Shown here: one piece after another, positions 13,420 to 64,000 of the stretch | Layout of the letters: the number at the start of each line of letters is the position of its first letter | How positions within the stretch are numbered: position 1 is the stretch's first letter | NCBI GenBank assembly: GCA_000320545.1 | Contig: ADNK01002524.1 | Coordinates: 115,526 to 179,525 of the forward strand | Direction: 5' to 3' | Source of the DNA: Bigelowiella natans CCMP2755 | Taxonomy: Eukaryota > Protista > Cercozoa | Length of the DNA stretch: 64,000 nucleotides | The notes under the pieces: model-generated | Told to the model about the DNA's origin: nothing | The model's input: the letters and a program-made list of their open reading frames with translations, nothing else | Databases searched by the model: none | Program-made: the position numbers and the translations under genes

Positions 13420-16250
13420 TGTCACCTCCTTGTTGACATTTTCTAGATCCAGCGCATGTTGTTGTTGGTTCAAAGCCCAATTTGCGGTCGTTGGTCGAAG
13501 GCAAATACACAGTACGAGAAGAACAGACGAAACGCTGCAACTCATTCTCCTGAACGAAAGGCAGACAGGCAGAGCCGGTCCCATTGCTCAAATTTGGACA
13601 AATACCAAAAATGTTGCCAATTGTCGTCACGCACGAAACACAGGCGAATTTCACATATTTTAGTCTCAAATGAGCACATTTTTCAGATGAAAGCAGCCAC
13701 GATTCCTTTGGGTAATTTTGCCTGCAATCACATTGGGAAAAGTAGCATGTGAAATGCAAGGGCATTTCATCATTGCGTCGTGAACACATTGGGCAAGCGC
13801 GCGCAAATTGACGACTAACATTCATGTCAGTGATGGAACGCAAAGTTTGTGCTGACCATCCTTGTCATTGTCCTCAGCTTTCTTGGTCATGGGGCCCTTG
13901 CTAGTTGAATCACAAAACACCAACAGGGTGCTGACAAGTCCTCGCAATGATTTTTGCTGAGGCGCTGCTGCGTGTTTGTGCATGCTGACATGCCTCCCAT
14001 GCGGTTCTTGCTCGTGCAGTTTTGCATTGATGCCTCAATTGTTGTTCGTTGCGTTCATTGTTCACGGACAGGATGCAGGCCGCTTTGAGTCCTGACGTGC
14101 GTGCACGTTGACTTTCATTTGTTCCTTCAACGGTTCCAATCGGAAGCGCACCGTGCTGCACACTAGCTAGTGCGTGCCAGCGTGGTGTGTCCATTGTTTG
14201 TCACTTGCACACCCAAACGTCCGCACGTTCATTGACACGGCGTGCGCAGCAGGTGCAACAATGCACTTGTTGTGCACATTGATTTGATGTCCATCATGCC
14301 AGAGTGATGGATCACGTGATTTGTCTGCAGTGCTGCCCCCCCCCAACCACACTGGCACACTCTAGCACTGCCAGACTGCTGGACTGGCATGCGTAGACGT
14401 TCTTCTTTCACCCATTCTGTGGTTCGATGCGACATTCGCTTGACACGTTTGCAATTTGAAAGCTGCAAAGGGGCGTGCTAGCGTGAGTGAGTCAACACGT
14501 TTCGCGACCCTTTTCGCTAGACCACAAGTGAAGCACTGTGTGTTGTTCGCTTTTTGACGTCATTCACTCCGCCACATTCTGGACATTCCGCGCGCCCCCG
14601 CTAGCCCGTCAGCCAGCCGCCAGCCGCCATCAAGCTGAGCTGGTTCGAGTCTCCTGCTTTGCGCACTCGCTAGCTCGTGCAACGTCTGCTGGTCTGCTCT
14701 GTGACATGTCTAGCTGTGCTGACCGAAGTTGACTAGCCTCACTTCAATCAGCACTGGAGCGCACTGTGCGTGCAGTGCGGCAATGACAACTTCGAAACTC
14801 TTGGCCAACAAGTTTCCAGCATTCGTCAGTTGTTGCACCATGCCAGCATGCTGCATGCTGGCATGGCTAGATGGGTCAGTGAACAACTTCATTCGTTGCT
14901 GTGCAACACTAGAACATCAGAATGCAGAAGAAAACAAAGCACTGAAGCGGAGTCTGCCTCCTCCCATGCTTGAAAACAAGCGTCGCAGGTGCGCGTCACA
15001 CGATTGCTTTCTCTTGCCAATTTGCTGCGACTCAAGCAAAAATTGTGCGCCACATGGAAATTGCACAATTTCAGGTTCAGATCAACGTTGGACCGCTCTT
15101 AGCAGCGATTGGAACCGAAGAGCGCAACAATGATGACTTCCAACGGGCTTTCTAGTTTTGTGAATCAGGCTAGCAGGTGCCTTCGACACGTTGTCATGCC
15201 CATGATGGCCAGCTTGATGCATGAACTGTTGAACTTCCATGTCACACACCTCCAGACTAGCAGACCTCACAGACCTTGCACGTGTCGCAAGCGATGCGTG
15301 CAAGCAAACTCGAACGCCAAAACGTCTAGAAGTCACGCTGCTACATCTGCCACATCATCTTGCCATGCTTCACATTCAATTCCCCCATGTGGGATCGGAG
15401 CACCATCCAGTGATCACAGCAAGCTAACGTGCTAGCAACACCTAGAGTTGTGCCGCGCATGCTGGCTGGGAGCTAGGCTAGCACGTGTGGGCATGCAAAC
15501 GATGCATCATTATCATCTGATCATGCCAGTGTTCACGCACCATTGACTTCACTGCACAGCTCCGTCAAACCTGTGACGAATCGCCAGAACATGCATTTGG
15601 AAGCTTTTGCGCGCGATCAAGCGCGTCATGCGTGATGCAATGGACATTGGATTAGCTCGCATTTCTTTGAAATTTTTCGTGCATGTCACATTTGGTCAAA
15701 CACACGCGCAAAAGCATTCAAAATGTGGCAGAGAACAAACGCGCAGCGTGCATCCTCTGCACAACGGGTGTGAATTTTCACACTTTGCGCGCTCACTGAG
15801 GCCTTGAAGCTGGACATTTGGGTCAGTATTTCGGTTATTTTTTGAGGTTTGGCCATCGGACAAGTTCTGATGACTTTTCTTTGACCAACTGCAACTGCCT
15901 GCTGCTTCAAAGCGCTGCACTGTTCACAACCCCGTCGTTACCGGGTTTGACTGAGCTGTGTGTGCACGTTGAAAATGTGAGCCAGTGTCACCTCACGCAG
16001 CATGTGACTGCCCCAGACACATTGCGCGTCAGCACGTCAAAAAATGCTTGAACCATCCAGATCATGTGTCATGCAAGCATCGCACACACGAACATGCACG
16101 CATGCAGCACAGTAGCTAGCTAGCTAGCTATGATCGAAGCAAAATGCAAACTCACACCATGTGTGGTGTGTCAAAATTTTGCATGAATTTTGCATTGTGG
16201 GGCCAGTCTAGCAGTGCTAAGTTGTTACATATATACAGAGATGCATGCGA
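13420..16250. other. TpA-depleted island B, containing degenerate Cys/His-rich reading frames
   Basis: TA is nearly absent outside CTAG. Many overlapping ORFs occur, consistent with loss of TAA/TAG stops, and the translations are Cys/His-rich and Tyr-poor. There is a (GCTA)n run at ~16113-16130. Confidence 0.8.
14363..16219. mobile_element. Possible TIR-bounded element of ~1.85 kb
   Basis: Left end TAGCACTG-CCAGACTG-CTGGACTGGC (14363-14388). The right end GCCAGTCTAGCAGTGCTA (16202-16219) is its inverted complement, lacking one 8-nt unit. Both ends terminate in TA. No transposase is recognisable inside. Confidence 0.3.
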
Positions 16251-28950: not shown

Positions 28951-29473
28951 GACAGACACAACAATCACAGCCATTCCTATGGATAGAACTAAAAAGCATA
29001 TATGCACGCTTGGACGAGACCGCGATTTCCAAATGATGAGTATTATATTATATTTATTCTGTACTGATTTTCCCTTGTTGTATTGCACAACCGCACAAAC
29101 GCACACACACACACACACATACACACACATAATATATACATATAAATTGTATCTAAATATAAAATAAAGTCGTACTTAATATCCAATACGCTTTCACTTG
29201 CGATTCGATGTAGAACTGCGCTAGCGAGAAGACCGGAAAATGCCTAAACAAAACCGGGAGGCAGCTCTCTCAGCAAAAGGGTTTGCCATGCAGCATTCCA
29301 GTCAATTCTATTGCATTTGAAACGCTTACGAACATAAAAACCACGCGAGGCGCAGCAACGAGATAGAGCACGCACGTTGAGATGATGTTCACTAAGTATG
29401 CGTTTGAGCAATTTTTAGCATTCTTTTCATTCGCCTGATTTGAGATAAATAAGGATTAACTGTCGATTTTCTG

Positions 29474-38129: not shown

Positions 38130-38269
38130 CATAACAACAACTTATCTTCAAGATGCATGCGTGATGTTGAAAAGAACAAGAGAACTTTCGCTGCTTACAT
38201 ACCAGTGATACTGTTTAATTGCGCTGTAGCCCAAACTCCCACATTGACATGACCATCATAAACGGAGTG

Positions 38270-39060
38270 GCAACAATTTGCAACATGCGTGCGCTGCGCA
38301 ATTCTTTGGACTAAGGTCAAGGCCCTTGTTGTGCGTGCGTGATGATGGTAGTTTTTTTTGTTTTTTTGGGACACCGGAATGCTCTTGCAAGCTGCATGTG
38401 AAAGGATGCTACGCTCGGATGCCGCATGGTCGCACTGATGTTGTCATCGCTTGGACCTCGCGTCTGGCTAGCTAGCTAGGTCAACAATCAAAGTCCACAA
38501 CAGACTGTTGCCAAAGAAATCCTCAACTTTCGCCAGATGTTCAGTCACATGAGGATCGGAGATCACGCTGATTTTTCATGAGCCAGTCTGCCAGCATGAC
38601 TCTAGCGACCAATGCATGATCACTGCTGCAACCGCACCTGTGAACTGTCGATCGAACCTTTGCCATGGAATCCTTTTGTTCATTCATTCACATGACAACC
38701 CGCCATGTGGAGTCATTGGACACAACCAAACACCGCTGAAGCCAGATGAACTCAATGAGAGGGTGGTGAACACCAGAACACAAACAGGGAGGGCGGTCAA
38801 CTGTGACGTGCCAGTCTAGCAGTCTAGCAGTGTGGTTCGTCGTGCACCCTTGCGTGCAGCTTTGAAATCATGCACTCACATTTGGATGTCAGCATGCTGG
38901 CAAGCACGGCGCTCCAGCGCTGCGGCACCTTTTGTCTAGCTTCACATGTTCTGCAATGGCAGTCCAGCGGCCATTCGCACAAGCACTGCAAGTCCAGAAT
39001 TGGCGCGCTGGAAAAACGACGGGGTTTGTGCAATGCGACATCAATTTTTGATGTCGCTCA
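38270..39060. other. TpA-depleted island C
   Basis: TA is scarce outside CTAG. Contains gctagctagctagg at ~38468 and GCCAGTCTAGCAGTCTAGCAGT at 38810. Confidence 0.7.
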
Positions 39061-41807
39061 CTCAAAATATTACGCTGACTCTTCGCTCAGTTAAGACATG
39101 AGATCTTTCTGGACGAGTCCGACCTGCTACGAGTAGCCTGGTGGACGTGCATTTCACTACACAGTGACCGATGGAAACCGGTATTTTTTTGCAAAAATGT
39201 TGAATTATTCTTTGTCGTTCGCATAAATTCCCCCTCTTTGTCGCATGCATTATGGTGTGGAATATGATGAACTAAGACCGAAATCTGCCTGAAAGCCGCT
39301 CCAATGGCCATCTGCGTACCATTCCGGCCATCTTCAGTGGCACACCACCTTGATCAGCAGTGAGGAGGAGATCTGAAGATGGAGGTGTCAGTGATACTAG
39401 GGAGCTGCGCGAGAGAGATGGAGGGGGAAGGTGAAAGGGGAGGGAGGGGGGAGAGACCGGGCTAGTAGTCTTTTGTTTCACTCTGTTGAGTCTGGTGCAT
39501 TGAAATCATGCAGATGGACTCCAACGCTCTGACCAGGGAAGAGTTTGAGGGTTTCCCTCATGAGCATGTTGCAAAATGGCTCCGTGCGAACGAAGTTGCA
39601 CTCAAAACGAATCAAAACATTATCAAGGTTCAAACATCGACCCGCATCTACCCCCTCCCTCCCTTCCCCAATGAAGTCATGTGCATCACTAGCAAAGACC
39701 TCAGCTTTTATACACGCAAGCTTGAATGCAGATGAAAGGGAAATAGTCGACGACGACACTGCGACTCAACTAATGTCCCTACATCCACAGATTATAGAGG
39801 AAAATTGGCTCAAAGGTAAGGATCTGTTGGAATTGACCCTGGATGAAGTAAAGGAGATGGTTGACGGCAGGATGGGGCCACGGAAACAACTCCTCAACCT
39901 CATCTCAACACTTAATGATATGTTCAAAAAAGCACAACACGGCGATATCAAAGAACCCTCATCGCATGTAAGGAAAACTCAAGCATTTGGAACCAAATCT
40001 CTTTTTCGATAGAACACATGATGTATTTTGTCACGATTTCAGAATTGCAGTGGGAAAACCTACGCTCTTGCAGAAAGTCTGAAACAATATTCCATGATTA
40101 GTGTCATTATTATAATTATGATTGTTAATTAATGATATATGAATCAACCATAAAATTTTCAGTGAAGCGGCAACCAAAAATCATCACTATAAACTCTTTC
40201 TGATCATCTCTCTAAACGCTTTCTACCCCCACGTTGGTTTCTTTTCCTGTATTTCGTGTTCTTTAAATTGTAGTCATCGTTAGTCCTAAAGAGTCCCGTA
40301 ACCGCAAAGAAGTCCTTGTCGCACATACGATTAGTTTAGTCATTTTTTCATTGCTTCTAACAGTTGGCCAGCCACATGGAACGTTTTACGACCTATGTTG
40401 TAATCATCAATGCCTAAGCTTAGAAATATGTAAGTACCAGTACTTTCAATTGGGTATCGTATTGGTTTCAATTTGTTTTTCAATCGAATGGTGTGTACCA
40501 CCATGGGAAAATATCTCTCAAAACGGTTTTTTTTTTTGCCCCCACGCCAATACGTTTTAATCGAATCTATATTTCTCGTGACTCTACTCCTTTCTCGATA
40601 TTTCTCTTTGTATCTCACACAAAGTCAAAGGTGTCGATAAAGCAGGTCCCAGCCCACATCGCGTTTATAGCATCTTCTCCGACAAATGAGAAGGATAAGA
40701 ATAAACTCGATCAGGAGACGGAGTACGATATAATGCGGGATCTGATCAGAGAGTCCCGCCTCAGATTCCAACTCCAGTTCTCGATCTCGAGATGGCGTGC
40801 AAGCGTGGAGAATATACAAGAAGCTATCTATTCGGGTTGTTTTTGCATCCATCATTCTGGGCATGGGCATAGAAAAAAGGGGCTCTACATCGAAGGCGGT
40901 GAGGAATGTAGTGGTCCCGACACATTTCTGGATGGAGAATCCCTTCGAGAAATGATCCAAAAGATCACACATCCAGAGAGAAGGCCCAAGATTGTGTTTC
41001 TAGCAGCATGCCATAGCGAGGTTGTTGGTGAAAAACTAGTGAAAGATGGGTTGGTGAATCACGTGGTTGTCTGTCGGAAAGAGGACGAGCTTGGCGACAA
41101 CGGTGTTCCGGTATTTGTCCGCAAATTTTATCAACGATTGCTGGCAGGAGAGACTATATTGAAAGCCTTTAGTCAAGCGAAGAGACAACTTCGAGAGATC
41201 ATTAAATGGCGGGTACACCGGGCACTCTCCATTCTTGAAGAGCATGTTTCTGAGGGAAAATTTAAGGAAGTTTCTCAGAAAGTGAATGAAGGAGACGTCC
41301 CATTCGGGGAGGAGATATACAGTAACATTCGCGCCTTAATTCCGAAAGAGAACGATTCTTTTGCACAAGAGATGAAGGATGATGTCAATAGGTTGCTCGA
41401 CTGGGCAGAGTATGCTGAGATTGAGGAACCCAAGTGCATACTTTTACCCCGCTCGAACGACGACAAATCCCACGACGTCAAGTACGAATTTAAGGTGTCG
41501 ATGCGCATTGAACCTAAAAAGGGATGGATCCCGACCCCGGAGTCGTTCTTTTCGCGGGATCCGGTAAAAAAACAGTATGAAAAAATCATCAGAAATTGCC
41601 GCCTGTCGATTAAAAACGATCATGCACTTTTAGAAAAAAGGTTTGCGAGGCGATGGCTTCAAATTGTTGGCGGGAAAGAAACAGGGAAAACCGCATTGGC
41701 GATGGCGGTCGCCTGGAGAATGTGGCATGACAATGACGGGCCAAATCCGATGTTTTGGGTGAGCACGCAACAATGAGCATTTTCCTCTAAATCTCTACTT
41801 CCTCTCT

Positions 41808-41848
<41 letters not shown>

Positions 41849-42689
41849 TCCTCACTTTCTCCCCCTTTCCCGCTTCATATTTCCCTCTGTCTCTTCTCTT
41901 CTCTGCACTTACTTTATGGACAAGTGTGTGCGTGCTCCTATTTCACATGTGAGATGTGTTTTCATCGCATTAATATTTTTAGGTGGATCTACCGAATTCC
42001 GTCGATGCAGGAGGCGTTCTGTCAGCCGTGGCTAAGGCGACACTTTCCGATGTCCCAGGAGAGCCGCTGCATACCCTCAAAATTTTACCAGCGTCGAAAC
42101 GAATACTATTGGTACTTGCGAAAGTTTAACGTTTAGTATTGGAGGTTGTTGTTGTAGCTTGATGTGGGATTGGGCAAACAACGCATCGATTTTTTTAGTA
42201 AACCCTTATTAAATCTGCTAATATATTTAGCCTTCTCCGATCTTCCTCATTCTTTCCGAAAACGTCTTAAGATTAGCAAGTCTTTGCTGCTGCTCATTTC
42301 TGATTCTAGAACGATTTTCGTGCTCACTTACTATTGACTACTCAGATATGCGACAATACACCCAACCTCATCGGGCCTTCTGTGTTTCATGAGATACTCA
42401 AGACAAGAAAATCTTTGTTGCTGCTGACCACGTCACGGATGAGAATTGCTGACCCGGATTCTTTGGTACACGATTGTGGTTTCAATGAGTTCAATTGTCA
42501 GTATTTTGAAGTTAGTTAGTCACAAAGTGATGTGCTTCTCCAGATTGTGGAGATGAACCCATTTTTCAGTAAAGAGAGGTTCAGGAAACTTTTTAAAGAG
42601 TATCTGAAATCGAATATCATTGGATGTGAGAACTTGCGACCTTGTCATTTTTCAAAGCTTTACAAAGGTATCTCATTTTAGTCGATGCT

Positions 42690-45600
42690 GGCGAATTGTG
42701 TTGACACATCAATTGGACATGTCGCAGATGAAAAGGTTGGCAAGGACGTACGCAATCCTGCTATGTGCATGAAGATGGCAAAGCGAATGTCAAGAAAAGA
42801 TGTGCCTGTAGCATCTGAAAACCAAAAAATTGTGTTTGAGGACAAATTTCATTCAGTACGCATTGCCAAGACACTGATCGACGAAGAGAAAAAGGCGGAA
42901 AAGGTTGAATCTAGTTTTGTTTTGAATCAAAAAAAAATGGGTAAACACATTTGTGTTGATTCATCACACACACACATCTGCCAACACACATTTTCCTTTC
43001 TGGTCGATGCGGCCCCCGTTTGCCTTCCCACGGGGAAACCTGTGGCATCCAAAAAGTTGTCTGACGATGATTTTCATTTTTCAGAAGAGACTTCTTGCGT
43101 CAATGAAGTTCATTCCCGCTCCAGATCAAGTGCCTTTCTTCGTTGGGCGAAAGGATGTGGTCAAACAGGTTCTGCATGAACTCCAAGACACCAGCAAGCA
43201 AGTGCACCTGCTACATGGCTCTGGAGGCATTGGAAAGAGTCAGTTGGCCGTTCGATTGTTCAACTCCCTCATTGAAACCGGTCAACACTCTCACGCGTTT
43301 TGGCTGAATTGCCAATCAACTGAAAAGCTGACGATCAACTACATGCGCATCGCTGAGAAAATTCCAGGCCTGCACGTTGACAAGAAGAACATCAAATCGG
43401 CCATCCAAACCATCAGGGAACGAATCGAGACTGAGCGCTGCCTCCTGGTTCTCGACGACGTCAATGATTGTGGTGCGGTGACCGAATTCTCACCTAGGAA
43501 CAAAGGACACGCAATCCTGACATCAAGAAATTGCACTGATTGGAGTCCAGATGTCAAACCTTGGCGAATTGGGGGACTGGCAGAAGAAGACCTGATGCAG
43601 CTTGCCCATGAATTCGGTCCATCGATGCCGGATCCAAAAGGCGACGATGCGAAGAACTGCATGGAATGTCCAAAAACTGAATTTTCGGGTCACACCGTGA
43701 TCCTAGCGCAATTCTTCAGCTGTTGCAAACAAAGGGGCTGCGAGGTGGCAGATCGCATTGAGGAATTGCGAAAGACAAAACGCAATTGTGACAGAAAAGG
43801 GGAACAAATCCCGCTTGAAAAGTGGCTGGAAAAACTCAACAAGAGCACCTCACACAGCCAAAGCATCGTCGCAGTCGTCGACGAAAGCCTGGCCGCGATC
43901 GAGCGCACCGATCACACTCAGAACCAAGACGCTAGAGCTTCGTGTGTTGACGGCGAGCGCGCACTCGCATTGTTGCGTTCGCTCGCATGTCTGGATCCGA
44001 AAAACATTCCATTGGAGCTGGTTCTGAGGCTCAATGCATCGCACAACCAGGTTGGGGATTGCAAAGAACGTGAAAAAAAAAGTGAGCAGTTGCTCTCTTC
44101 CATCGAGGACGAAGAAGTGCACCGTGCTGAAGATGGTGAAAAAGTGCGCGACGCATTGGCGCATCTAGAGCGCTGTTCTTTGACACAGTGGAGCAAAGAA
44201 ACCAAGCACATGAACATGCACGCTGTCACACAACGCATGGTCAGATGTCTGCGGCCAAAGCCCGACATCAACAAGCTGGTTGAAGCCCTGGTTCGCCATG
44301 GAGGCGACTTGGATGAAGCTCACAACCCCCAGGAAGAATGTGCTGCAGTGCTCCGGCACGGAACCCAGCTCGCAACTGATGGCTTCGAGGCAGAACAAAG
44401 TGGGAACCTAGCAGCTGCTGTGGCACATGCCTGGGCAAACACGTTTGTGTCAAATTGTCACACACACACACACACACATCTGCCAACACACACTTTCCTT
44501 TCTCATCGATGCGGCCCCCGTTTGCCTTCCCACGGGGAAACCTGTGGCATCCAAAAAGTTGTCTGACGATGATTTTCATTTTTCAGAAGAGACTTCTTGC
44601 GTCAATGAAGTTCATTCCCGCTCCAGATCAAGTGCCTTTCTTCGTTGGGCGAAAGGATGTGGTCAAACAGGTTCTGCATGAACTCCAAGACACCAGCAAG
44701 CAAGTGCACCTGCTACATGGCTCTGGAGGCATTGGAAAGAGTCAGTTGGCCGTTCGATTGTTCAACTCCCTCATTGAAACCGGTCAATGCTCTCTCGCGT
44801 TTTGGCTGAATTGCCAATCAACTGAAAAGCTGACGATCAACTGCATGCGCATCGCTGAGAAAATTCCAGGCCTGCACGTTGACAAGAAGAACATCAAATC
44901 GGCCATCCAAACCATCAGGGAACGAATCGAGACTGAGCGCTGCCTCCTGGTTCTCGACGACGTCAATGATTGCAGTGCGGTGACCGAATTCTCACCTAGG
45001 AACAAAGGACACGTGATCCTGACATCCAGAAATTGCACTGATTGGAGTCCAAATGTCAAACCTTGGCGAATTGGGGGACTGGCAGAAGAAGACCTGATGC
45101 AGCTTACCCATGAATTCGGTCCATCGATGCCGGATCCAAAAGGCGACGATGCGAAGAACTGCATGGAACATCCAAAAACTGAATTTTCGGGTCACACCGT
45201 GATCCTAGCGCAATTCTTCAGCTGTTGCAAACAAAGGGGCTGCGAGGTGGCAAATCGCATTGAGGAATTGCGAAAGACAAAACGCAATCATGACAGAAAA
45301 GGGGAACAAATCCCGCTTGAAAAGTGGCTGGAAAAACTCAACAAGAGCACCTCACACAGCCAAAGCATCGTCGCAGTCGTCGACGAAAGCCTGGCCGCGA
45401 TCGAGCGCACCGATCACACTCAGAACCAAGACGCTAGAGCTTCGTGTGTTGACGGCGAGCGCGCACTCGCATTGTTGCGTTCGCTCGCACATCTGGATCC
45501 GAAAAACATTCCATTGGAGCTGGTTCCAAGGCTCAACACATCGCACAACCAGGTTGGGGATTGCAAAGAACGTGAAAAAAAAAATGAGCAGTTGCTCTCT

Positions 45601-46670
45601 TCCATCGAAGAGCTGGTTCCAAGGTTCAATTCATCGCACAACCAGTTTGGGGATTGCAAAGAACAAAAAAAAAAAATGGAGCAGTTGCTCTCTTCCATCG
45701 AGGACGAAGAAGGGCACTGGGCTGAGCGGTTGCTCTCTTTCATCGATGATGAAGAAGTGCACCGCGCTGAAGATGGTGAAAAAGTGCGCGACGCATTGGC
45801 GCATCTAGAGCGCCATTCTTCAATGCAGTGGAGCAAAGAAACCAAGCACATGAACATGCACGCTGTCACACAACGTGCAGTCAGATGTCTGCGGCCAAAG
45901 CCCGACATCAACAAGCTGGTTGAAGCCCTGGTTCGCTGTGGAGGCGACTTGGATGAAGCTCACGACCGCCAGGAAGAATGGGCTGCAGTGCTCCGGCACG
46001 GAACCCAGCTCGCAACTGACAGCTTCGAGGCAAAACACAATTGGAACCTAGCTCGTGCTGTGGGAAATGCCTGCAACGTTGCATGCCTTCATGACAAAGC
46101 ATCAGTGTGGTTCAAGAAGGGTGCAAAAATGATGGATGCTGAAGTTCCTGCACAACCCAGGGAAAAGGCAAAATTGGCTGATGGCTACAACAACATCGGC
46201 GGAGTGTGCAGCAGCATGGGCAAGTACCCGGAGGCACTCGAGGAATGCAAAAAGGCCCTCGACATCGAGTTGGCGGTGCATGGCAATGACAAACCCCATC
46301 CTGATGTGGCTCGTAGCCACAACAACATCGGCACTGTGCACAATGGGATGGGCAAGTACCCGGAGGCACTCGAGGAATTCAAAAAGGCCCTTGACATGTG
46401 ATTGGCGGTGCATGGCAAGGACAAACCCCATCCTCATGTGGCTACTTGCTGTGACAACATCGGCGAAGTGCACAAAAGCATGGGCAAGTACCCGGAGGCA
46501 CTCGAGGAACACAAAAAGGCCCTCGATGTCGAGTTGGCGGTGCACGGCAAGGACAAACCCCATCCTCATGTGGCTACTAGCTACAACAACATCGGCTTCG
46601 TGCACAGAAGCATGGGCAAGTACCCGGAGGCACTCGAGGAATGCAAAAAGGCCCTCGATGTGCGGTTGGC
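42690..46670. other. TpA>TpG/CpA converted domain (island D) inside the NLR-like gene
   Basis: Hand count: 7 TA in 43081-44434 (5 CTAG, 2 CTAC), against 15 TA in 40621-40920 and 13 TA in 46981-47280 of the same gene. Confidence 0.9.
42941..46070 (+). repeat. Tandem duplication of an intron plus NB-ARC exon (copy 1 42941-44434; copy 2 44435-~46070)
   Basis: The copies align directly at an offset of ~1.5 kb. Copy 2 carries extra internal duplications (93-bp period at 45517-45702, plus a 45-bp partial repeat). Confidence 0.95.
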
Positions 46671-46977
46671 GGTGTACGGCAAGGACAAACCTCATCCTAG
46701 TGTGGCTGCTAGCTACAACAACATCGGCAGAGTGTACGGAAGCATGGGCAAGTACCCGGAGGCACTCGAGAAATACAAAAAGGCCCTCGATATGCGGTTG
46801 GCGGTGTACGGCAAGGACAAACCCCATCCTGATGTAGCTACTTGCTACAACAACATCGGCACTGTGTACGATGGCATGGGCAAGTACCCGGAGGCACTCG
46901 AGAAATACAAAAAGGCCCTCGATATGCGGTTGGCGGTGTACGGCAAGGACAAACCCCATCCTCATGTGGCTGCTAGC
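46186..46977 (+). repeat. Six near-identical 132-bp (44-aa) TPR-coding tandem repeats, followed by more divergent TPRs to ~47400
   Basis: Units start at 46186, 46318, 46450, 46582, 46714 and 46846. Consensus YNNIGxVYxxMGKYPEALEKYKKALDMRLAVYGKDKPHPxVAxS. Confidence 0.95.
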
Positions 46978-48235
46978 TATCACGACATTGGCTCAGTGTA
47001 CCAACGACGAGGAGAGAAGGGAGATATCGAAAAGGCGATAGAGCTTTACAAGAAAAGTTTGGATATGAGAAAAAGGATTTTCCTGACAGTCGATGCCAAG
47101 GCGCATCGTCTTGTAGCATCATCCCAACACGATCTTGCGCTCGCATACATGTCACGAGGCGGACAGGGAGATATTCAAAAGGCGATAAGACTTTACGAGA
47201 GTAGTCTGGAAATGAGGAAAAAGATCTTTCTAAAAGGTGACGTGAAGGTGCATCATGAGGTAGCATCATGTCAAACGGTTCTTGCGACCGCGCACTTAAT
47301 GCAAGGATCTAAGGATGATATCGAGAAGGCGATAGAGCTTTTGGAGAAATGTTTGGAGATGGAGGAGGAGATTCGACGAATAGAAAGAGGCAAGGCTGAT
47401 AAGGTAGCAACAATACTTGTTATTATCGCGTTAGCTTATAAAAGGAAACTTGTCCCAGTTTACGAAAAGATTTCATCTCTTCGTAAGCCCAAATTTAACC
47501 AACGCTATGTCAATATGAAGTCGGCTCTGATGCAAAGACTCACCAGGCTGTCATATCATTCGATACTAATGCAATCTGGCATTGGGAACGCAAATCATGA
47601 ATCTCGGATGATCGATACCCTACTCGCAGTGCTCCACTTCAAATTCCACAAAGCAGACCCAAAGGATGTAGCCGTATTCGTGTCCAATTTGAAGTCCCGA
47701 AAGCGGTATCTCGAAACTAAAGGGAGTCATGGCAAGGTTGGTTCACCCCCTCCATTGCCAGCATTACCGGTGGGGATCTTACCACGGGGAACAGAGCAGT
47801 CTCTTTTCTGTCCTAAAATTGCTGGAAACGGCGGAGATGGAAAGAGACTGAGCGGGAACTCGGGAGGTGGAGAACGCAGGACCGGTGTAGGAGCAGTGGA
47901 AGGAAGTGTTCTTGTGGCGTTGGAAAAAGGGGGGGGGGGTCGGAGTGAGGGTGACAGGAAGCAGAGCAGGCAAAGAGCGCGTAAAAAAAGAAACGGAAAG
48001 AAGCGAAATGGGAAGAAACGAAAATGAATTTGATGAAGAAATTGACTATGTGAGCCAGCATCGAAGCATCAGCCCAGTGCCACTCTTGCACGTAATTAAA
48101 GTGTCAACAAATGTAGCCTAGTGCTGCATCATACTACTGTGTTGTGCTGCTGTAGTCCTATACTCATTACATTATATTATTTTACTTAAACTATATATTA
48201 GGGGGATTGGGGACATTTAATTTATATATTTATAT

Positions 48236-48529: not shown

Positions 48530-49880
48530 GAATGAATGTGCATCCTGCAGATTGTGCGATGCATGCATCGCATTAGCAAGGTTCATGAATGTTAGCTGCC
48601 TGGCTAGGTAGCTAGCTAGCAACGATGTCACATGAACACGCATGACAACATGCAGGGGGCACATGCATGCACTAGGCAAATGCAGGCAAAGCATTCATTT
48701 GGGATGTTGGCACATCAAATTCTCATGATCATGCGAGTTCATTGTTTGCGAGCTGCACATCCCAAAACATGTTCATGCTCATGCACAGATAAATTTAGCT
48801 TTTGGCCAATGCCAGAATGGCACAATCTAGCAATGATTGACCATGCGATGCTAGCTAGGTAGCATGCTGCCACAGCACGTGAGGTCAATTTGCGTCGAAA
48901 ATGATGTGCGTCACCAGCTAGCCTGGGAAATTTTTTACATGATTTACAAGTAAATCTGGAAATGGTGGAGTTCAAAATGACATGGAAATTCATCTTCATT
49001 TGATTTGCACAACAACGTCATTGACAAGTTGATGAGCATTTGTTAAGCATTCTTTTGATTACCATCCCGACAGCTTTGAGCGTGCATGCAAGCTAGCAAG
49101 TGCAGTTTCTGCAATGCGATTAATGTTGCGACCGTTTGTAGCAGTTCCACTTAGCGCGCACAACTAGACAACGCGCATGCGTGTGTTGTGCTGCACATGC
49201 TAGCATGCACGCCTGCTAGCGAGAAGCTCCAGAGCTAGCAAAGCTGTGGGTCGATGTAGCTGACTACTGAGAATGACAAAAAAAGAGATGCAATGCTCGC
49301 TAGCTCGTGCTAGCGTGGTCTGCACGATGCACGATGGCGTCGTGCATGCGCTTGTACTACATGGACTATTGAACATTGCGTGCATCCACCACTCTCTCTA
49401 ACACTTGCGTGTGCACGTGAACGTGCGACAGGCACGGCGCAACTTTGTGAGCATGCAGCATGTCACACGGTGAACAAAGACACAACTGTGATCACAAATC
49501 CACTTTGCGAATCCAAAAATGCAAAATCTGGCACATCCATCCCCAACATCGCGATGCACTAATCACAAACATTCACGTGGATCCTCACTTGTTGAGAGTC
49601 TTGCAACACAAACGGTCCGACAAGTCTTCTTCATTTCGTCAACCGCAAATATGGTAATGCAAAAGAGACTTTCCATCACTCACATTCTCCAAGTTCCGAG
49701 ATGAAATGTGCAACTTCTTGAATATGCACACCCAGCGCGTCACATCAACCAACACCCCTTCTTTTCGAACACGCGGTGCCATCTTCCACCAGCTAGCACA
49801 TCTCAATGTCAGCACCATCCGCTCATTGCTGGAGGATGGATTGCCCCCAAGACATCATTTCTTCGACCTAGAACAGGAGA
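48530..49880. other. TpA-depleted island E
   Basis: Rich in CATG, TGCA and CTAG, with TA scarce otherwise; ggctaggtagctagctagc at ~48602. The signal fades towards ~50300. Confidence 0.7.
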
Positions 49881-52524: not shown

Positions 52525-54702
52525 TATATAAAAATATATTTTATAGAATAAATATGTGTATACGGGAGATTTATCGAGAAACGACTTCAATAGCGAAATG
52601 GAAATGCCGTGAAAAAACTAAGACACGAAATCGCTTTACTCCCATGAGTACGTTAAGCACAAATAGAGGATATAGACGATAGGTACTACCAACAGAGGAA
52701 TTAACTCGAGAAAAGGGGGGGAAGAGGGGAATGCGGGGAAAGGAAGGGGGGGGGGGGGGACGAGCGATAGATGACGCTATGCTATTCAAATCCATTACTT
52801 GATTGCTTCTGAAACAACCCGATCTGATGGCAGAAGTTTCCGTCAAACAGAGTGAATCTCGGCTGGTCGCCATTCCTCCCATCGTTGGTGCCGTTGACCG
52901 TCCTCCCCCACAGCGCCACGCCGCTCATCCCCAGCGAGTAGAACTCGTTGCGGGTGATGCTCGTGTTGCGATTGTAGCCCGAGAGGAACACCGCGTGGGA
53001 ATCCATCTTCGTGAATAGGTTCCCGCTGATTTCGACGCCTTTCGTGCCGTCGAGGTAGATGGCGCCGAGGCGCTGCAGAGCCCAATCCCCCCCCGAAGGC
53101 ACGCCGTGAGCTTCCATGTAGGTAGGCCTCGTCGCCCTGAACTCGATGTTCTTGATGGAAATCTCTTCCGCGGGGGCGTCCATGTCGCCGCGGATCTCGA
53201 TCATCTGCGCGGCGGTGGGCACGACGATCTCAGCCGGGGGGGTGGGGGGAGACGGCGCGGCTGGCGAGGACGAGCCGTTGTAGTAGAAGTGCAGCTGGCC
53301 GGTGGCGGCGTCAAAGAAGAACTCGTTTGGGGCATCGAGCTCCTCCAGCACGTTGTCCACGTACCACTCCCAGGCGGTTTCGGAGCCCTCCCCCCCCTGG
53401 TGGCCCCCCTTGGAGAAGACGAATTCGTCGGAGTTGGTGTGCGGCGCGTAGCCCGAGAAGGCCTCGTCCTGGTCCATCGGGTTCCAGAACTCCACGGCGG
53501 AGGCGTAGCACTGCCCGCGCCACGCCTCATCCGCAAACTGCGTCGAGTGCCATGTGAAAACGACGAAGGCCGTCGCGCTGTCGTTGACCGCCTTCCAGCA
53601 GCCGTCCATGGAGTCGAACTCCCCGAGGTAGGTGACCGTGTCCGTGGAGGCCTTCGGCGCGGGGACCAGGCCGGCGACGTTGTTGGCGTTGTCGGCGATC
53701 GTCCACGTGTCGACGCGCGCGCCGGGGTTGACGGCCCCGACCTCAAACATCCAGGAGAACCAGTGCCCCGAGCGCCACGTGTGGATCTCCGCGCCCACGA
53801 CGCTTCCGGCGGCGTACTTGGGGTAGTTGGGCAGGTTCTTTGAGCCGATGATGCTGCTCGGGGAGCGCGCGTGCATCTCGGGGAGCTGCCTCGCGGTGTA
53901 GAAGTCCTTCGAGCACCACGGGCTCTGCGGGGGGTCGTAGCGCGAGCATGCGCCGCCATAGCCCATCGTATAGTTCTGGAACATCCCGTGCCAGGAATCG
54001 TCCACCGGAATGGTGCTCGTTTCGCTGGGGCCGCAGAAGTCGTTCGGGTCGCACTCCTTCCCCTCGTAGACGGGCATGCCCCACTGCGTGGCGTCTTTGC
54101 TGACCCAGCCCTGCGGGAAGAGGTCGGTCTCGGGATTGGCGTTCGGGTAGCGCGCGCGTGTCGCACGGCGGCCGGCGACTTGCAGCGCCTTGATGCCGTT
54201 TGGGAGCGACGCGAGCTGCTCGTCGCTCAGCTGAGCGACGAAGATGCCATCCTTGTCGCCTCGAGGGGCCCATTGAACTGTGAGGGGTACTCCGCCGCTG
54301 ATGACAGCGTTGTCCTCTCCCTCGATGGAGAGGCCGGAGTCTTGCGAGGTCAGCACTACCGGTGTTAAGACGTGGTGAGTACCTGCGAGAAGAACGATGC
54401 GCTGTATGCCGAATGCGCGATGCATATCGACGGCCTTTGCAAGTGTTTTCAGAGGGCTGTCGCGGCTCCCCTTCCCGTCGTCATCGCCATTGACAGGGTC
54501 AACGAAGAGCGCGGCCTTGTCATCTTCCGCGTACGGGATTGGTGCAGTCATGCGAGCCATCTCTCTTTTGTCGGAAGGGAAGGTTTCATTGCAAAGGGCG
54601 GAGAGCTCCAGCGCATCCCAGAGTGCACGCAGCTTTGCGGTGTCCTTCGTGGATGAGGGGGGTAGGGTTGAATATTGAGCTTATCGAAGAGCTCCCACTC
54701 TT

Positions 54703-56147: not shown

Positions 56148-57740
56148 ATGAAGCAAGAAGATCGAGACAGTAGCCCACACAACCACGAGAGGAAAAAGGA
56201 GCAGACATTACATATGAAGAGACCTTCTGAACCAATGAAATTCTCCCTCAAGTATAACCCGACAACGCTTAAGGCTATGGAATATAGGATTCTCTCGTGT
56301 GCTCGTCCGCATATGCGGGCTTTCCATCTTGCTTGGTCCTCATTTCTGGTTGCATTTATAGCTTGGTTCTCCTTTGCACCGTTGGGTCCAGCAATAAAGG
56401 AAACGCTAGGTCTTACAAAAAAGGACCTTCTATGGGCTAATATCGCCTCGGTGTTGCCAACTCTCTTTGCAAGGTTTGCAGTGGGACCTGTTATGGATCA
56501 CATAGGGCCGAGAAAAAGTCAGGCTTTTATCCTTATGTTCGCTGCGATTCCAACATTTTTTGCGGGATTGATCCAGGGCATCGTGGGTCTTTGTATTATT
56601 CGCGGTCTCGTAGGGGTTGCTGGAGCAGCTTTCGTCGGATGCCAGTTTTGGTGTACTTTGATGTTCGAGAAGGAGATTGCCGGAACAGTCAACGCCACAG
56701 CAGGAGGGTGGGGCAATCTGGGCGGAGGGCTCACACAGGCACTCATGGTTGGTATCTTTGCCATGAACACATCTTCACCAAGTTGTGACCAGGAATGCGG
56801 GTGGCGCAATGCCTTTTTCATTCCTGCATTTGCACTGGTACTCTTTTCTGTGTCGATATTGCTTCTCGCGGACGATTGTCCCCAGGGAGGGTATGTACCC
56901 CCAGTCCAAACTATGACTACATCATCCATCATAATGGAACACGAGGAGCAGGATAATATTCAACCTGGCAAAGGCCAAAGAAAGAAAAAGCGCCAAACAG
57001 CACATATTAGCGATGTTGTGAGGAATTCCCAAGTCTGGGCTCTCGCCCTTCAGTATGCATGCAGCTTTGGAATAGAACTACATGTGAATAATACGATTGC
57101 ATTTTACTATTGGGATCGGTTTGGGTTAGCAATTACCGCAGCAGGACTTATAGCGTCGCTATTCGGTTTAACAAATCTCTTCGCACGTGCATGGGGTGGG
57201 ATGATATCTGACTTTTGTTATCGGCACTGGGGACTGATAGGACGCAAATATAGCCTTGTTTGTCTCACATGCTCCCAAGGTGTTCTTCTTATCGTATTTT
57301 CAAGAATGACTACTCTAGAAGCATCCATCGGCTTGATGGTGATATTCTCGATATTTGTTCAAGGAACTGAAGGATCTACTTTCGGGATCGTGCCGTACGT
57401 AGACCCACTCAATAATGGCGGGGTGTGCGGCTTCGTCAGTGCCGGCGGTAACATTGGAGCTGTGGTGTGGGGGTTAATGTTCCTTTTGACCTCAAGTTAC
57501 AGCGACGGTTACATGATTTTAGGGATCATCGTGCTCTTCACCGGTCTTCTGGGCATCCTTACCATTAGAATATATGATACATCACATAGCGGAAAGAAAG
57601 GCTTTCATGGAAATGATGTAAGTAACAATAACTATGATGGAGCGAACAGCTTACCGGAGATAGAAGAACGGAATAAGTGCTCTACATTAGAATTAACCAG
57701 TATTTCTATGGACCACAAGAATGGCGGCGTCCCGAGATAA
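56148..57740 (+). CDS. NRT2: High-affinity nitrate transporter (NRT2 / nitrate-nitrite porter family), intronless
   Basis: 530-aa single ORF with ARPHMRAFHLAWSSFLVAFIAWFS, GPVMDHIGPRK, the NNP signature AGTVNATAGGWGNLGGG, FGLTNLFARAWGGMISD and GSTFGIVPYV. Confidence 0.95.
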   Translation: MKQEDRDSSPHNHERKKEQTLHMKRPSEPMKFSLKYNPTTLKAMEYRILSCARPHMRAFHLAWSSFLVAFIAWFSFAPLGPAIKETLGLTKKDLLWANIASVLPTLFARFAVGPVMDHIGPRKSQAFILMFAAIPTFFAGLIQGIVGLCIIRGLVGVAGAAFVGCQFWCTLMFEKEIAGTVNATAGGWGNLGGGLTQALMVGIFAMNTSSPSCDQECGWRNAFFIPAFALVLFSVSILLLADDCPQGGYVPPVQTMTTSSIIMEHEEQDNIQPGKGQRKKKRQTAHISDVVRNSQVWALALQYACSFGIELHVNNTIAFYYWDRFGLAITAAGLIASLFGLTNLFARAWGGMISDFCYRHWGLIGRKYSLVCLTCSQGVLLIVFSRMTTLEASIGLMVIFSIFVQGTEGSTFGIVPYVDPLNNGGVCGFVSAGGNIGAVVWGLMFLLTSSYSDGYMILGIIVLFTGLLGILTIRIYDTSHSGKKGFHGNDVSNNNYDGANSLPEIEERNKCSTLELTSISMDHKNGGVPR

Positions 57741-59212: not shown

Positions 59213-59534
59213 TTCTCTCAGAAAATAAAGTGACATATTAAGTTTTTAATATATGCTGTGCTCGTTTCTCTCCATTATATATAGTATATATATATATATA
59301 TATATATATACTATAATGAGGAAACATAACACGTGTCCGTGCACGCGCGCGTGTGGTGTATGCATGTGTGTGTGGGGGGAAGGGGGGGGGTGTATAAGAT
59401 ATTGGTGTTGCGAAGAAAGCTTGTTTGTCGATCATTCGTGCATAAAATATCGTAGGACGACCGCACGCTGAAGCCCATAGATGATCCGAATCAAGTTTCC
59501 CCTAAACATCACAATCGACATAAGACACACAAAT

Positions 59535-59581
<47 letters not shown>

Positions 59582-60033
59582 CTTACAACTGCAGATGATT
59601 CGGTAATAACTATATGCGGTATGTTAGGCCGAAAAAGATCCGCGTTATACCGCAGGGTAATACGGCGGGTAGTAATACCAAGCAAATCTTCCAATTCTCT
59701 GGTATTTCGATCTCGACTGCATTCTCCTCTGGTTGGACAACGCTCACTGTCGCCGTACATCCTACTTAAAGATAATTATTTACACTTTTTGTCTATATCA
59801 TTACGCAAAGCATATCGTTGTCTGTGCGTGCGTGTGTTTGTGTGCGTGTTCGCGTGTTGGCGTGTGTTTGCGCCTTTGTGCGGCCAACGTGTCCATGGGT
59901 CACCCGCAATGCTCGACGAATCGTCTACATTTGGAGAACACGAAGAAGCGTGAAACGGGTCTTGGCTGCTGCCCTCGAAATACTCCCGCAACGTAGTTTT
60001 CCCTTTCCTTTCATTTGTCGTACGTAAGCTGGA

Positions 60034-63609: not shown

Positions 63610-63659
<50 letters not shown>

Positions 63660-63684
<25 letters not shown>

Positions 63685-63907
63685 TATAATGAGGAAACAT
63701 AACACGTGTCCGTGCACGCGCGCGTGTGGTGTATGCATGTGTGTGTGGGGGGAAGGGGGGGGGTGTATAAGATATTGGTGTTGCGAAGAAAGCTTGTTTG
63801 TCGATCATTCGTGCATAAAATATCGTAGGACGACCGCACGCTGAAGCCCATAGATGATCCGAATCAAGTTTCCCCTAAACATCACAATCGACATAAGACA
63901 CACAAAT

Positions 63908-63954
<47 letters not shown>

Positions 63955-64000
63955 CTTACAACTGCAGATGATTCGGTAATAACTATATGCGGTATGTTAG
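63660..64000 (+). repeat. Direct repeat, copy 2 of 59288-59627
   Basis: Identical by eye apart from the length of the upstream (TA)n run. Confidence 0.9.

Follow-up and report, generated by a model that had tools for sequence, protein, structure and literature searches.

In the rhizarian alga Bigelowiella natans, integrated viral DNA is subject to hypermutation targeted to the dinucleotide TpA (Mettrop et al. 2026, bioRxiv preprint, 10.64898/2026.01.13.699255). Here we describe a locus in a 64,000-nucleotide stretch of the CCMP2755 genome (contig ADNK01002524.1, positions 115,526 to 179,525; hereafter the window, whose own numbering is used throughout) at which an island of lost TpA ends inside an array of near-identical TPR units, in a duplicated NB-ARC/TPR gene of NLR-like appearance. 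The island very probably belongs to the published process, with its edge held in the TPR array. In the mutation-accumulation lines of the preprint, 231 of 302 nuclear mutations fell in two integrated viral regions; these viral-region mutations, which arose only in some of the lines at ~6e-7 per site per generation, were almost all A>G/T>C changes at TpA. The authors also counted 124 TpA-depleted, CpA+TpG-enriched clusters of at least 3 kb in the genome and proposed an ADAT2-like deaminase. The text states that all GC-biased mutations lie at TpA; in the portion of Table S2 covered here, the region of the nucleocytoplasmic large DNA virus (NCLDV) includes four T>C changes in non-TpA contexts (ATG three, ATT one). 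Borders, flanking context beyond the dinucleotide, CTAG and paralog comparisons are not treated in the text of the preprint (10.64898/2026.01.13.699255), which shows TpA hypermutation in certain regions but not how the regions are chosen or end. The underlying process is already published; what is new here is a base-pair-resolved border in near-identical repeats, an NLR-like target of cellular type and a flanking-base hierarchy of survival.

Three other systems invite comparison. Fungal repeat-induced point mutation (RIP; Neurospora and others) also makes dinucleotide-specific transitions and skewed islands, inactivating duplicated DNA and leaking into the flanks. However, RIP changes C to T at CpA and so creates TpA, whereas the B. 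natans island loses TpA and gains CpA and TpG, and RIP requires duplication and a premeiotic stage, whereas in B. natans single-copy DNA is mutated in mitotic lines. ADAR hyper-editing and the TadA-family ADAT2-ADAT3 are alike in turning A into I, read as G, in preferring U or T 5' of the A and in acting on both strands; because tRNA A34 always comes after U33, an ADAT-derived enzyme would naturally read TpA. Their substrate is RNA, and editing of DNA has been reported for particular ADAT2 proteins only; the B. natans change, in contrast, is inherited in DNA. Highly similar TPR, WD40 or ANK repeats with hypervariable positions are a feature of fungal and bacterial STAND/NLR proteins (HET-E/NWD-type loci). 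The B. natans locus is like them in joining NB-ARC to near-identical repeats that vary in few codons (1, 7, 10, 11, 41 and 44 here), but unlike them in showing a second layer of variation, Tyr>Cys/His, which would come from TpA mutation and not from selection and which lies on one side of the border only.

Compared with the system of Mettrop et al., the species is the same, TpA becomes TpG or CpA, CpG is untouched, and TpA depletion on the kilobase scale goes with a gain of CpA+TpG. The hypermutable regions of the preprint are inserts of 186 kb (NCLDV) and 25 kb (virophage) and are unsaturated (Rho TpA 0.45 or even high), whereas the island at the NB-ARC locus is 4 kb long, saturated and set in a tandemly duplicated, NLR-like gene of cellular type. 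The preprint called clusters at Rho_TpA <=0.43 in 1-kb windows and CpA+TpG Rho >=1.52 over at least three consecutive 1-kb windows. At 3.9-4.0 kb, the island is long enough to be called, and its observed/expected (o/e) ratio for TpA (0.03-0.11 per 500 bp; 0.13 as a whole) lies below the cut-off. The changes are TpA>TpG and TpA>CpA when units 1-4 of the array are compared with units 5-6, with the family consensus or, in the NB-ARC module, between its two copies A and B. The o/e ratios of CA (1.34) and TG (1.61) are near the cut-off of 1.52, which was set for the two dinucleotides combined.

A step at homologous sites of the TPR array

Tandem Repeats Finder (TRF) reports the array at 46184-46998 with a period of 132, 6.2 copies and 87% matches. 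Cut in register from 46183, it yields six 44-aa units followed by degenerate units (Table 1), and one 24-mer is identical in all six. As diagnostic sites we took the four classes that carry TA in units 5-6, named V-Y, E/K-Y, GAT ATG and A-V-Y. The V-Y codon reads TGC, CAC, CAC and CAC in units 1-4 and TAC in both units 5 and 6; the E/K-Y codon reads TGC, TTC, CAC and TGC, again against TAC and TAC. At GAT ATG, units 1-4 show GACATC, GACATG, GATGTC and GATGTG, and units 5-6 both show GATATG, while the A-V-Y codon is CAT, CAT and CAC in units 1-3 and TAC in units 4-6. Taken in DNA order, all 15 sites up to 46659 are converted (14 to TG or CA, one to TT) and all nine from 46675 on are TA, a perfect step that would arise by chance, in either polarity, with P = 2/C(24,9) = 1.5e-6. 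The original prediction had described exactly such an abrupt end of conversion inside the array, with GATGTG at 46657-46662 converted and the TA of GTGTAC at 46675 kept, and both statements hold.

Two further parts of that prediction need qualification. It had contrasted TA in units 5-6 with conversion at the homologous positions of units 1-4; this is correct for the four classes up to 46659, but TAC is retained at S-Y-NNIG of units 1 and 4, no unit has lost the TA of the G-K-Y codon (AAGTACCC), and unit 2 shows TTC, neither TG nor CA, at one site. For TGT GAC of unit 3, the best reading is a double conversion of TAT AAC. The edge had been placed within ~15 bp, and its most likely position is indeed 46660-46675; because some TpA survive within the converted zone, the conservative range is wider, 46660-46735. 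Since the class sites are converted in 15 of 15 cases in the zone, a lone in-zone survivor at 46675 has a probability below ~0.2. Near-identical units on both sides of the border thus make the ancestral states known site by site and place the border to 15-75 bp.

The hypervariable codons of the unit show multi-nucleotide differences between units on an otherwise identical scaffold and are present on both sides of the border. Their pattern is as in the ligand-facing positions of NLR repeat arrays.

The direction of change, given as TA>TG/CA in the original prediction, is supported by comparison with relatives and between copies. Among 503 TPR units from 120 homologues, Tyr occupies unit positions 2, 9, 15 and 22 in 91, 84, 88 and 57%, and the degenerate unit 7 of the array itself retains Tyr. 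Across NB-ARC copies A and B, Tyr makes up 0-0.2% of residues, Cys 3-4% and His 5-6% (3.1% Cys and 5.0% His in copy B alone), compared to 3.3% Tyr, 0.9% Cys and 3.1% His in homologues. The two copies (42938-44432 and 44432-46073, a tandem duplication) align over 1496 nt with 60 differences, among them 17 adjacent TG<->CA discordant pairs; TA stands in one copy and TG or CA in the other at three sites, and in both copies at six. CG faces TG or CA at three sites only, and 93 CpG are left per copy. CpG decay therefore does not explain the TG<->CA differences, and the ancestor of the discordant pairs was TA, not CG. At least 37 conversions are younger than the NB-ARC duplication, compared to ~13 other differences outside the junction. 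The Tyr to Cys/His conversion left a gene that is Tyr-less and presumably dead, with one in-frame TGA.

The TpA-erased island and its survivors

Two-state segmentation places the island at 42686-46571. In 500-bp steps, TpA o/e is 0.03-0.11 from 43001 to 46000, 0.27 at 46001-46500 and 0.97 at 46501-47000, and CA and TG reach 1.33-1.75 in the 500-bp windows of the island. CpG o/e is 0.83 over 42686-46660, and after the edge (46661-48027) that of TpA is 0.74. In susceptible contexts, a single TpA survives in the 3975 bp of the island (at 42762), compared to ~50 per kb (~1 per 20 bp) outside. Strand bias gave no signal in the island (386 CA versus 333 TG) and no runs along the array. That the left part is inserted TA-poor foreign DNA was rejected, as the homology of units 1-4 to units 5-6 holds for each unit.

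Stop codons of the island number two TAA, 34 TAG and 165 TGA over six frames. With TAA and TAG nearly gone, long open reading frames (ORFs) arise in several frames and on either strand and cannot be taken as genes; spurious examples are 46102-46983 on the minus strand (293 aa) and 46136-46837 on the plus strand (233 aa).

Segmentation also finds TpA deserts at 13450-16110, 38232-39063 and 49370-49856. The first, of 2.7 kb, contains no ORF longer than 151 aa and has no second copy within the window, and the second, of 0.8 kb, sits just 5' of the CHAT/NB-ARC/TPR gene. A further TpA-erased stretch may lie at 52800-54654 (65% GC). Every island edge in the window is comparably abrupt (13450/16110, 38232/39063, 42686).

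To describe survival by context, we used the density of surviving TpA in the four window islands relative to normal DNA, per tetranucleotide. Values run from 1.7 for CTAG (1.0 for GCTAGC) through 0.34 for GTAC, 0.30 for CTAC, 0.18 for CTAA and 0.11 for GTAA to 0.02-0.04 for ATAC, ATAA, ATAG and ATAT and 0 for TTAA. One base further, TACA stands at 0.10, compared to 0.28 for TACC and 0.21 for TACT. Survival thus appears to be set by the flanking bases: TA between G or C (S-TA-S), above all CTAG, resists, and TA between A or T (W-TA-W) is erased. The value for CTAG suggests that it is protected, or is a sequence unusable by the editor. CTAG accounts for 40 of the 84 surviving TpA in islands 13450-16110, 38232-39063, 42686-46660 and 49370-49856 and is denser there than in normal DNA. 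TAG and CTA contexts make up ~10% of the events in the part of Table S2 covered here, counted by eye (10.64898/2026.01.13.699255); normalizing these eye-counted trinucleotide contexts by window composition is invalid, as the viral region is already depleted.

This hierarchy explains why AAGTACCC and GCTAC persist in units 1-4. At the two GTGTAC classes, an edited A before CA can explain all eight conversions, while the AAGTACCC site, which survives, offers TACC and TACT only; none of four AAGTACCC sites is converted, compared to seven of seven at the GTGTAC classes (Fisher's exact test, ~0.003). Product tetramer enrichments did not separate the base 5' of the T from the base 3' of the A as the driver. 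An immune CTAG, an erased W-TA-W and a TACA more depleted than TACC or TACT together form a testable fingerprint for candidate enzymes.

How the border may have arisen

We consider it moderately probable that a ~4-kb, TpA-specific A:T>G:C hypermutation island has its 3' border in this segment, and that this border is positional and heritable, not a joint or an artifact. The island covers the tandemly duplicated NB-ARC module and the first 3.6 TPR units, and nearly all susceptible TpA in it have become TpG or CpA; from 46675 on, the 132-bp unit and the rest of the gene are untouched. The editor would be the one active in the B. natans mutation-accumulation lines (by the authors' proposal, an ADAT2-like adenine deaminase), directed to a physically delimited tract. 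Its border would be heritable and independent of local sequence, because the border sequence recurs in every unit, and would most likely be set by a chromatin, small-RNA or transcript-defined domain. Much of the conversion would have followed the tandem duplication, which may have acted as the trigger; spread into the flanks would have been limited (252 bp on the upstream side, 587 bp on the downstream side).

A distance matrix of the units at non-TA sites, a comparison suggested along with the original prediction, shows no split of units 1-4 from units 5-6: the latter form no clade, and unit 2 is nearest to unit 6 (10 differences). Conversion therefore follows position and not unit lineage. 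Units 5 and 6 differ from each other at eight non-TA sites and other pairs at 10-18, with the differences between 5 and 6 confined to hypervariable codons except for column 126 (GTA in unit 5, GTG elsewhere). A recent duplicate pair of units 5-6 is not supported, given eight differences nearly all in hypervariable codons, and a four-unit higher-order repeat (unit 1 with 5, unit 2 with 6) is a weak candidate, with 13 and 10 differences. The sharpness of every island edge in the window also favors a positional border, which makes positional targeting, as first proposed, the most economical reading. Equally, being a repeat is not sufficient, as had been argued: repetition is no weaker in units 5-6 than in units 1-4, and TpA is normal in a perfect repeat of at least 343 bp located elsewhere in the window.

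Several points weigh against a positional border. Column 61 (GAA in units 1-4, AAA in units 5-6), the sole non-TpA site that co-segregates with conversion, could mark two different histories, and one past recombination joint would produce an identical step. A gradual process would have to hold its border steady to tens of bases until saturation, which is demanding, and the targeting principle is itself inferred rather than observed. In addition, the published hypermutable regions are viral and single-copy, whereas the NB-ARC locus looks host-like or bacterial-like, is duplicated and may not be targeted for the same reason; within the portion of the supplement covered here, there is no NB-ARC gene among the TpA-depleted coding sequences (10.64898/2026.01.13.699255).

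That an editor is addressed to tracts with heritable, base-pair-sharp and sequence-independent borders, and has also been turned on the cell's own duplicated immune-receptor-like genes, is a broader proposal that we make tentatively. If true, it would imply that a DNA base editor is addressed epigenetically or by guide RNA, and that a rhizarian alga has a RIP-like sensor of duplication or silencing, not aimed at viral DNA alone. On the positional reading as such, neither local sequence nor short tandem repetition decides targeting, the editor can destroy a cellular NLR-like gene after its duplication, and the border marks precisely where a boundary of chromatin, small RNA or transcription may be sought.

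The strongest alternative, possible although rather unlikely, is that a crossover or gene-conversion breakpoint in unit 4 joined a converted array to an unconverted allele or paralog, in which case the border is silent on the aiming of the editor. Unequal exchange readily uses near-identical 132-bp units such as these, the step is sharp without exception, and the GAA/AAA difference of column 61 divides the same units. Hypermutation in only some mutation-accumulation lines (10.64898/2026.01.13.699255) means that converted and unconverted haplotypes could coexist. However, two protein searches (of a database including the B. natans proteome) and a scan of the window and metagenome contigs for the conserved 24-mer found no donor for units 5-6: no protein exceeds 52% identity to the TPR part or 38% to the NB-ARC part, and the 24-mer occurs within the window only in this array and in none of the metagenome contigs. 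A separate joint would be needed for each of the remaining island edges, which are sharp too, and units 5-6 are no separate clade at non-TA sites.

A sub-case of the positional border is that duplication triggers the editing, as in RIP, and that the TPR edge is where leakage from the duplication stops. We regard this as unlikely, even though the island brackets the duplication (42938-46073) with overhangs of 252 bp and 587 bp and the conversions dated above, at least 37 of them, came after it. The published NCLDV target is single-copy (10.64898/2026.01.13.699255), the other islands of the window have no second copy inside it, and the change seen here is a step, whereas we would expect leakage to fade with distance. 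A perfect repeat with its copies 4.4 kb apart is also unconverted. This direct repeat, of at least 343 bp (59285-59627 = 63658-64000, reaching the end of the window; copies 4373 bp apart), holds 34 TA at normal TpA density; either it is very recent, or duplication alone does not attract the editor.

An assembly chimera, in which reads of a converted and an unconverted haplotype or paralog were merged inside the repeat, is improbable. Tandem arrays of 132 bp are prone to mis-joins, but here multi-nucleotide hypervariable codons mark each unit and make the array assemblable, the window contains no N or gap, and the edge does not interrupt the reading frame. When another strain was re-sequenced with Illumina reads against the 2012 reference, the genome-wide density of single-nucleotide polymorphisms was 1.5e-4 (10.64898/2026.01.13.699255), low enough to argue that the TpA deserts are not base-calling artifacts. 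Weakest of all, and very improbable, is selection, by which the whole array was edited and Tyr-destroying alleles were purged from units 5-6 and a still-functional C-terminal part: the frame does stay open for 455 codons past the edge with normal TpA content and ordinary stop-codon density, but synonymous or codon-spanning TpA are kept after the edge (GAT ATG, GTA GCT, GCT AGC) and lost before it (GAC ATG), so that the pattern follows dinucleotides and not amino acids, the gene body upstream lacks Tyr and contains a stop, which makes an intact product unlikely, and the database holds no transcript-derived protein match.

Genes and other features of the window

Table 1 Coordinates of features at the NB-ARC/TPR locus
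Feature	Position	Strand	Evidence or remark
Upstream ORF with CHAT (caspase-like) domain	40493..41776	+	Pfam CHAT 5.5e-7; outside the TpA-erased island
TpA-erased island (putative hypermutation domain), 3975 bp	42686..46660	.	30 TpA, o/e 0.13
NB-ARC module, tandem copy A	42938..44432	+	Pfam NB-ARC 1.8e-10; 1 Tyr/537 aa
NB-ARC module, tandem copy B	44432..46073	+	Pfam NB-ARC 5e-11; 0 Tyr/576 aa
Six 132-bp (44-aa) TPR units, TPR_10/TPR_12 type	46183..46974	+	TRF, Pfam, in-register unit table
Converted part of array: units 1-3 and unit 4 through column 82	46183..46660	+	15/15 informative sites lost TA
In-frame TGA, unit 2	46399..46401	+	no other stop from 44455 to 48027
Last converted TpA, now TG, within GATGTG 46657-46662	46659..46660		
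Unconverted part, internal reference: end of unit 4 and units 5-6	46661..46974	+	9/9 informative sites TA
First retained susceptible TpA, GTGTAC of unit 4	46675..46676		homologous site converted in units 1-3
Degenerate TPR units and C-terminal tail	46975..48027	+	frame open to 48027; TpA normal

The window can be placed by an intronless MFS/nitrate-transporter ORF at 56148-57737, which is 96-100% identical to the B. natans protein jgi/Bigna1/55712, with other chlorarachniophytes as the next closest relatives. That protein is gene model estExt_Genewise1Plus.C_680020, which puts the window on Bigna1 scaffold_68, in nuclear DNA. In the part of Table S2 covered here, the sole scaffold_68 mutation is a C>T at 29341, not at TpA (10.64898/2026.01.13.699255); the island in any case has few TpA targets left. 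An Rfam search of the whole window returned zero RNA families.

The NB-ARC matches sit in two ORFs, 42953-44566 and 44455-46401, and a third, 46402-48027, matches TPR_10 (1.3e-54) and TPR_12 (2.6e-53) in Pfam. An NB-ARC NTPase followed by a TPR_10/TPR_12 array is the architecture of an NB-ARC/TPR STAND (NLR-like) protein. STAND/TPR proteins are also native to many eukaryotes. For the NB-ARC part, the closest relatives come from bacteria (Ktedonobacteria, cyanobacteria and actinomycetes, at 22-38% identity), with no chlorarachniophyte homologue in the protein search, and judged by its sequence the locus looks like a host-like or bacterial-like CHAT/NB-ARC/TPR gene of NLR type. An intact expressible frame is lacking, given the TGA at 46399 and the nearly Tyr-less NB-ARC copies, and the database proteins include no gene model or transcript-derived protein for the locus. 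The TGA falls at a codon reading CGG in units 4-6, which makes it a non-TpA, background-type change. Tyr is at 2.9% in the degenerate TPR and C-terminal part, and TpA o/e is 0.59 across 39068-42685, the stretch with the CHAT ORF. Copy B of the NB-ARC module contains internal tandem duplications of 93 bp and 45 bp (TRF arrays at 45517-45770) that have no counterpart in copy A, so the locus kept rearranging after the main duplication.

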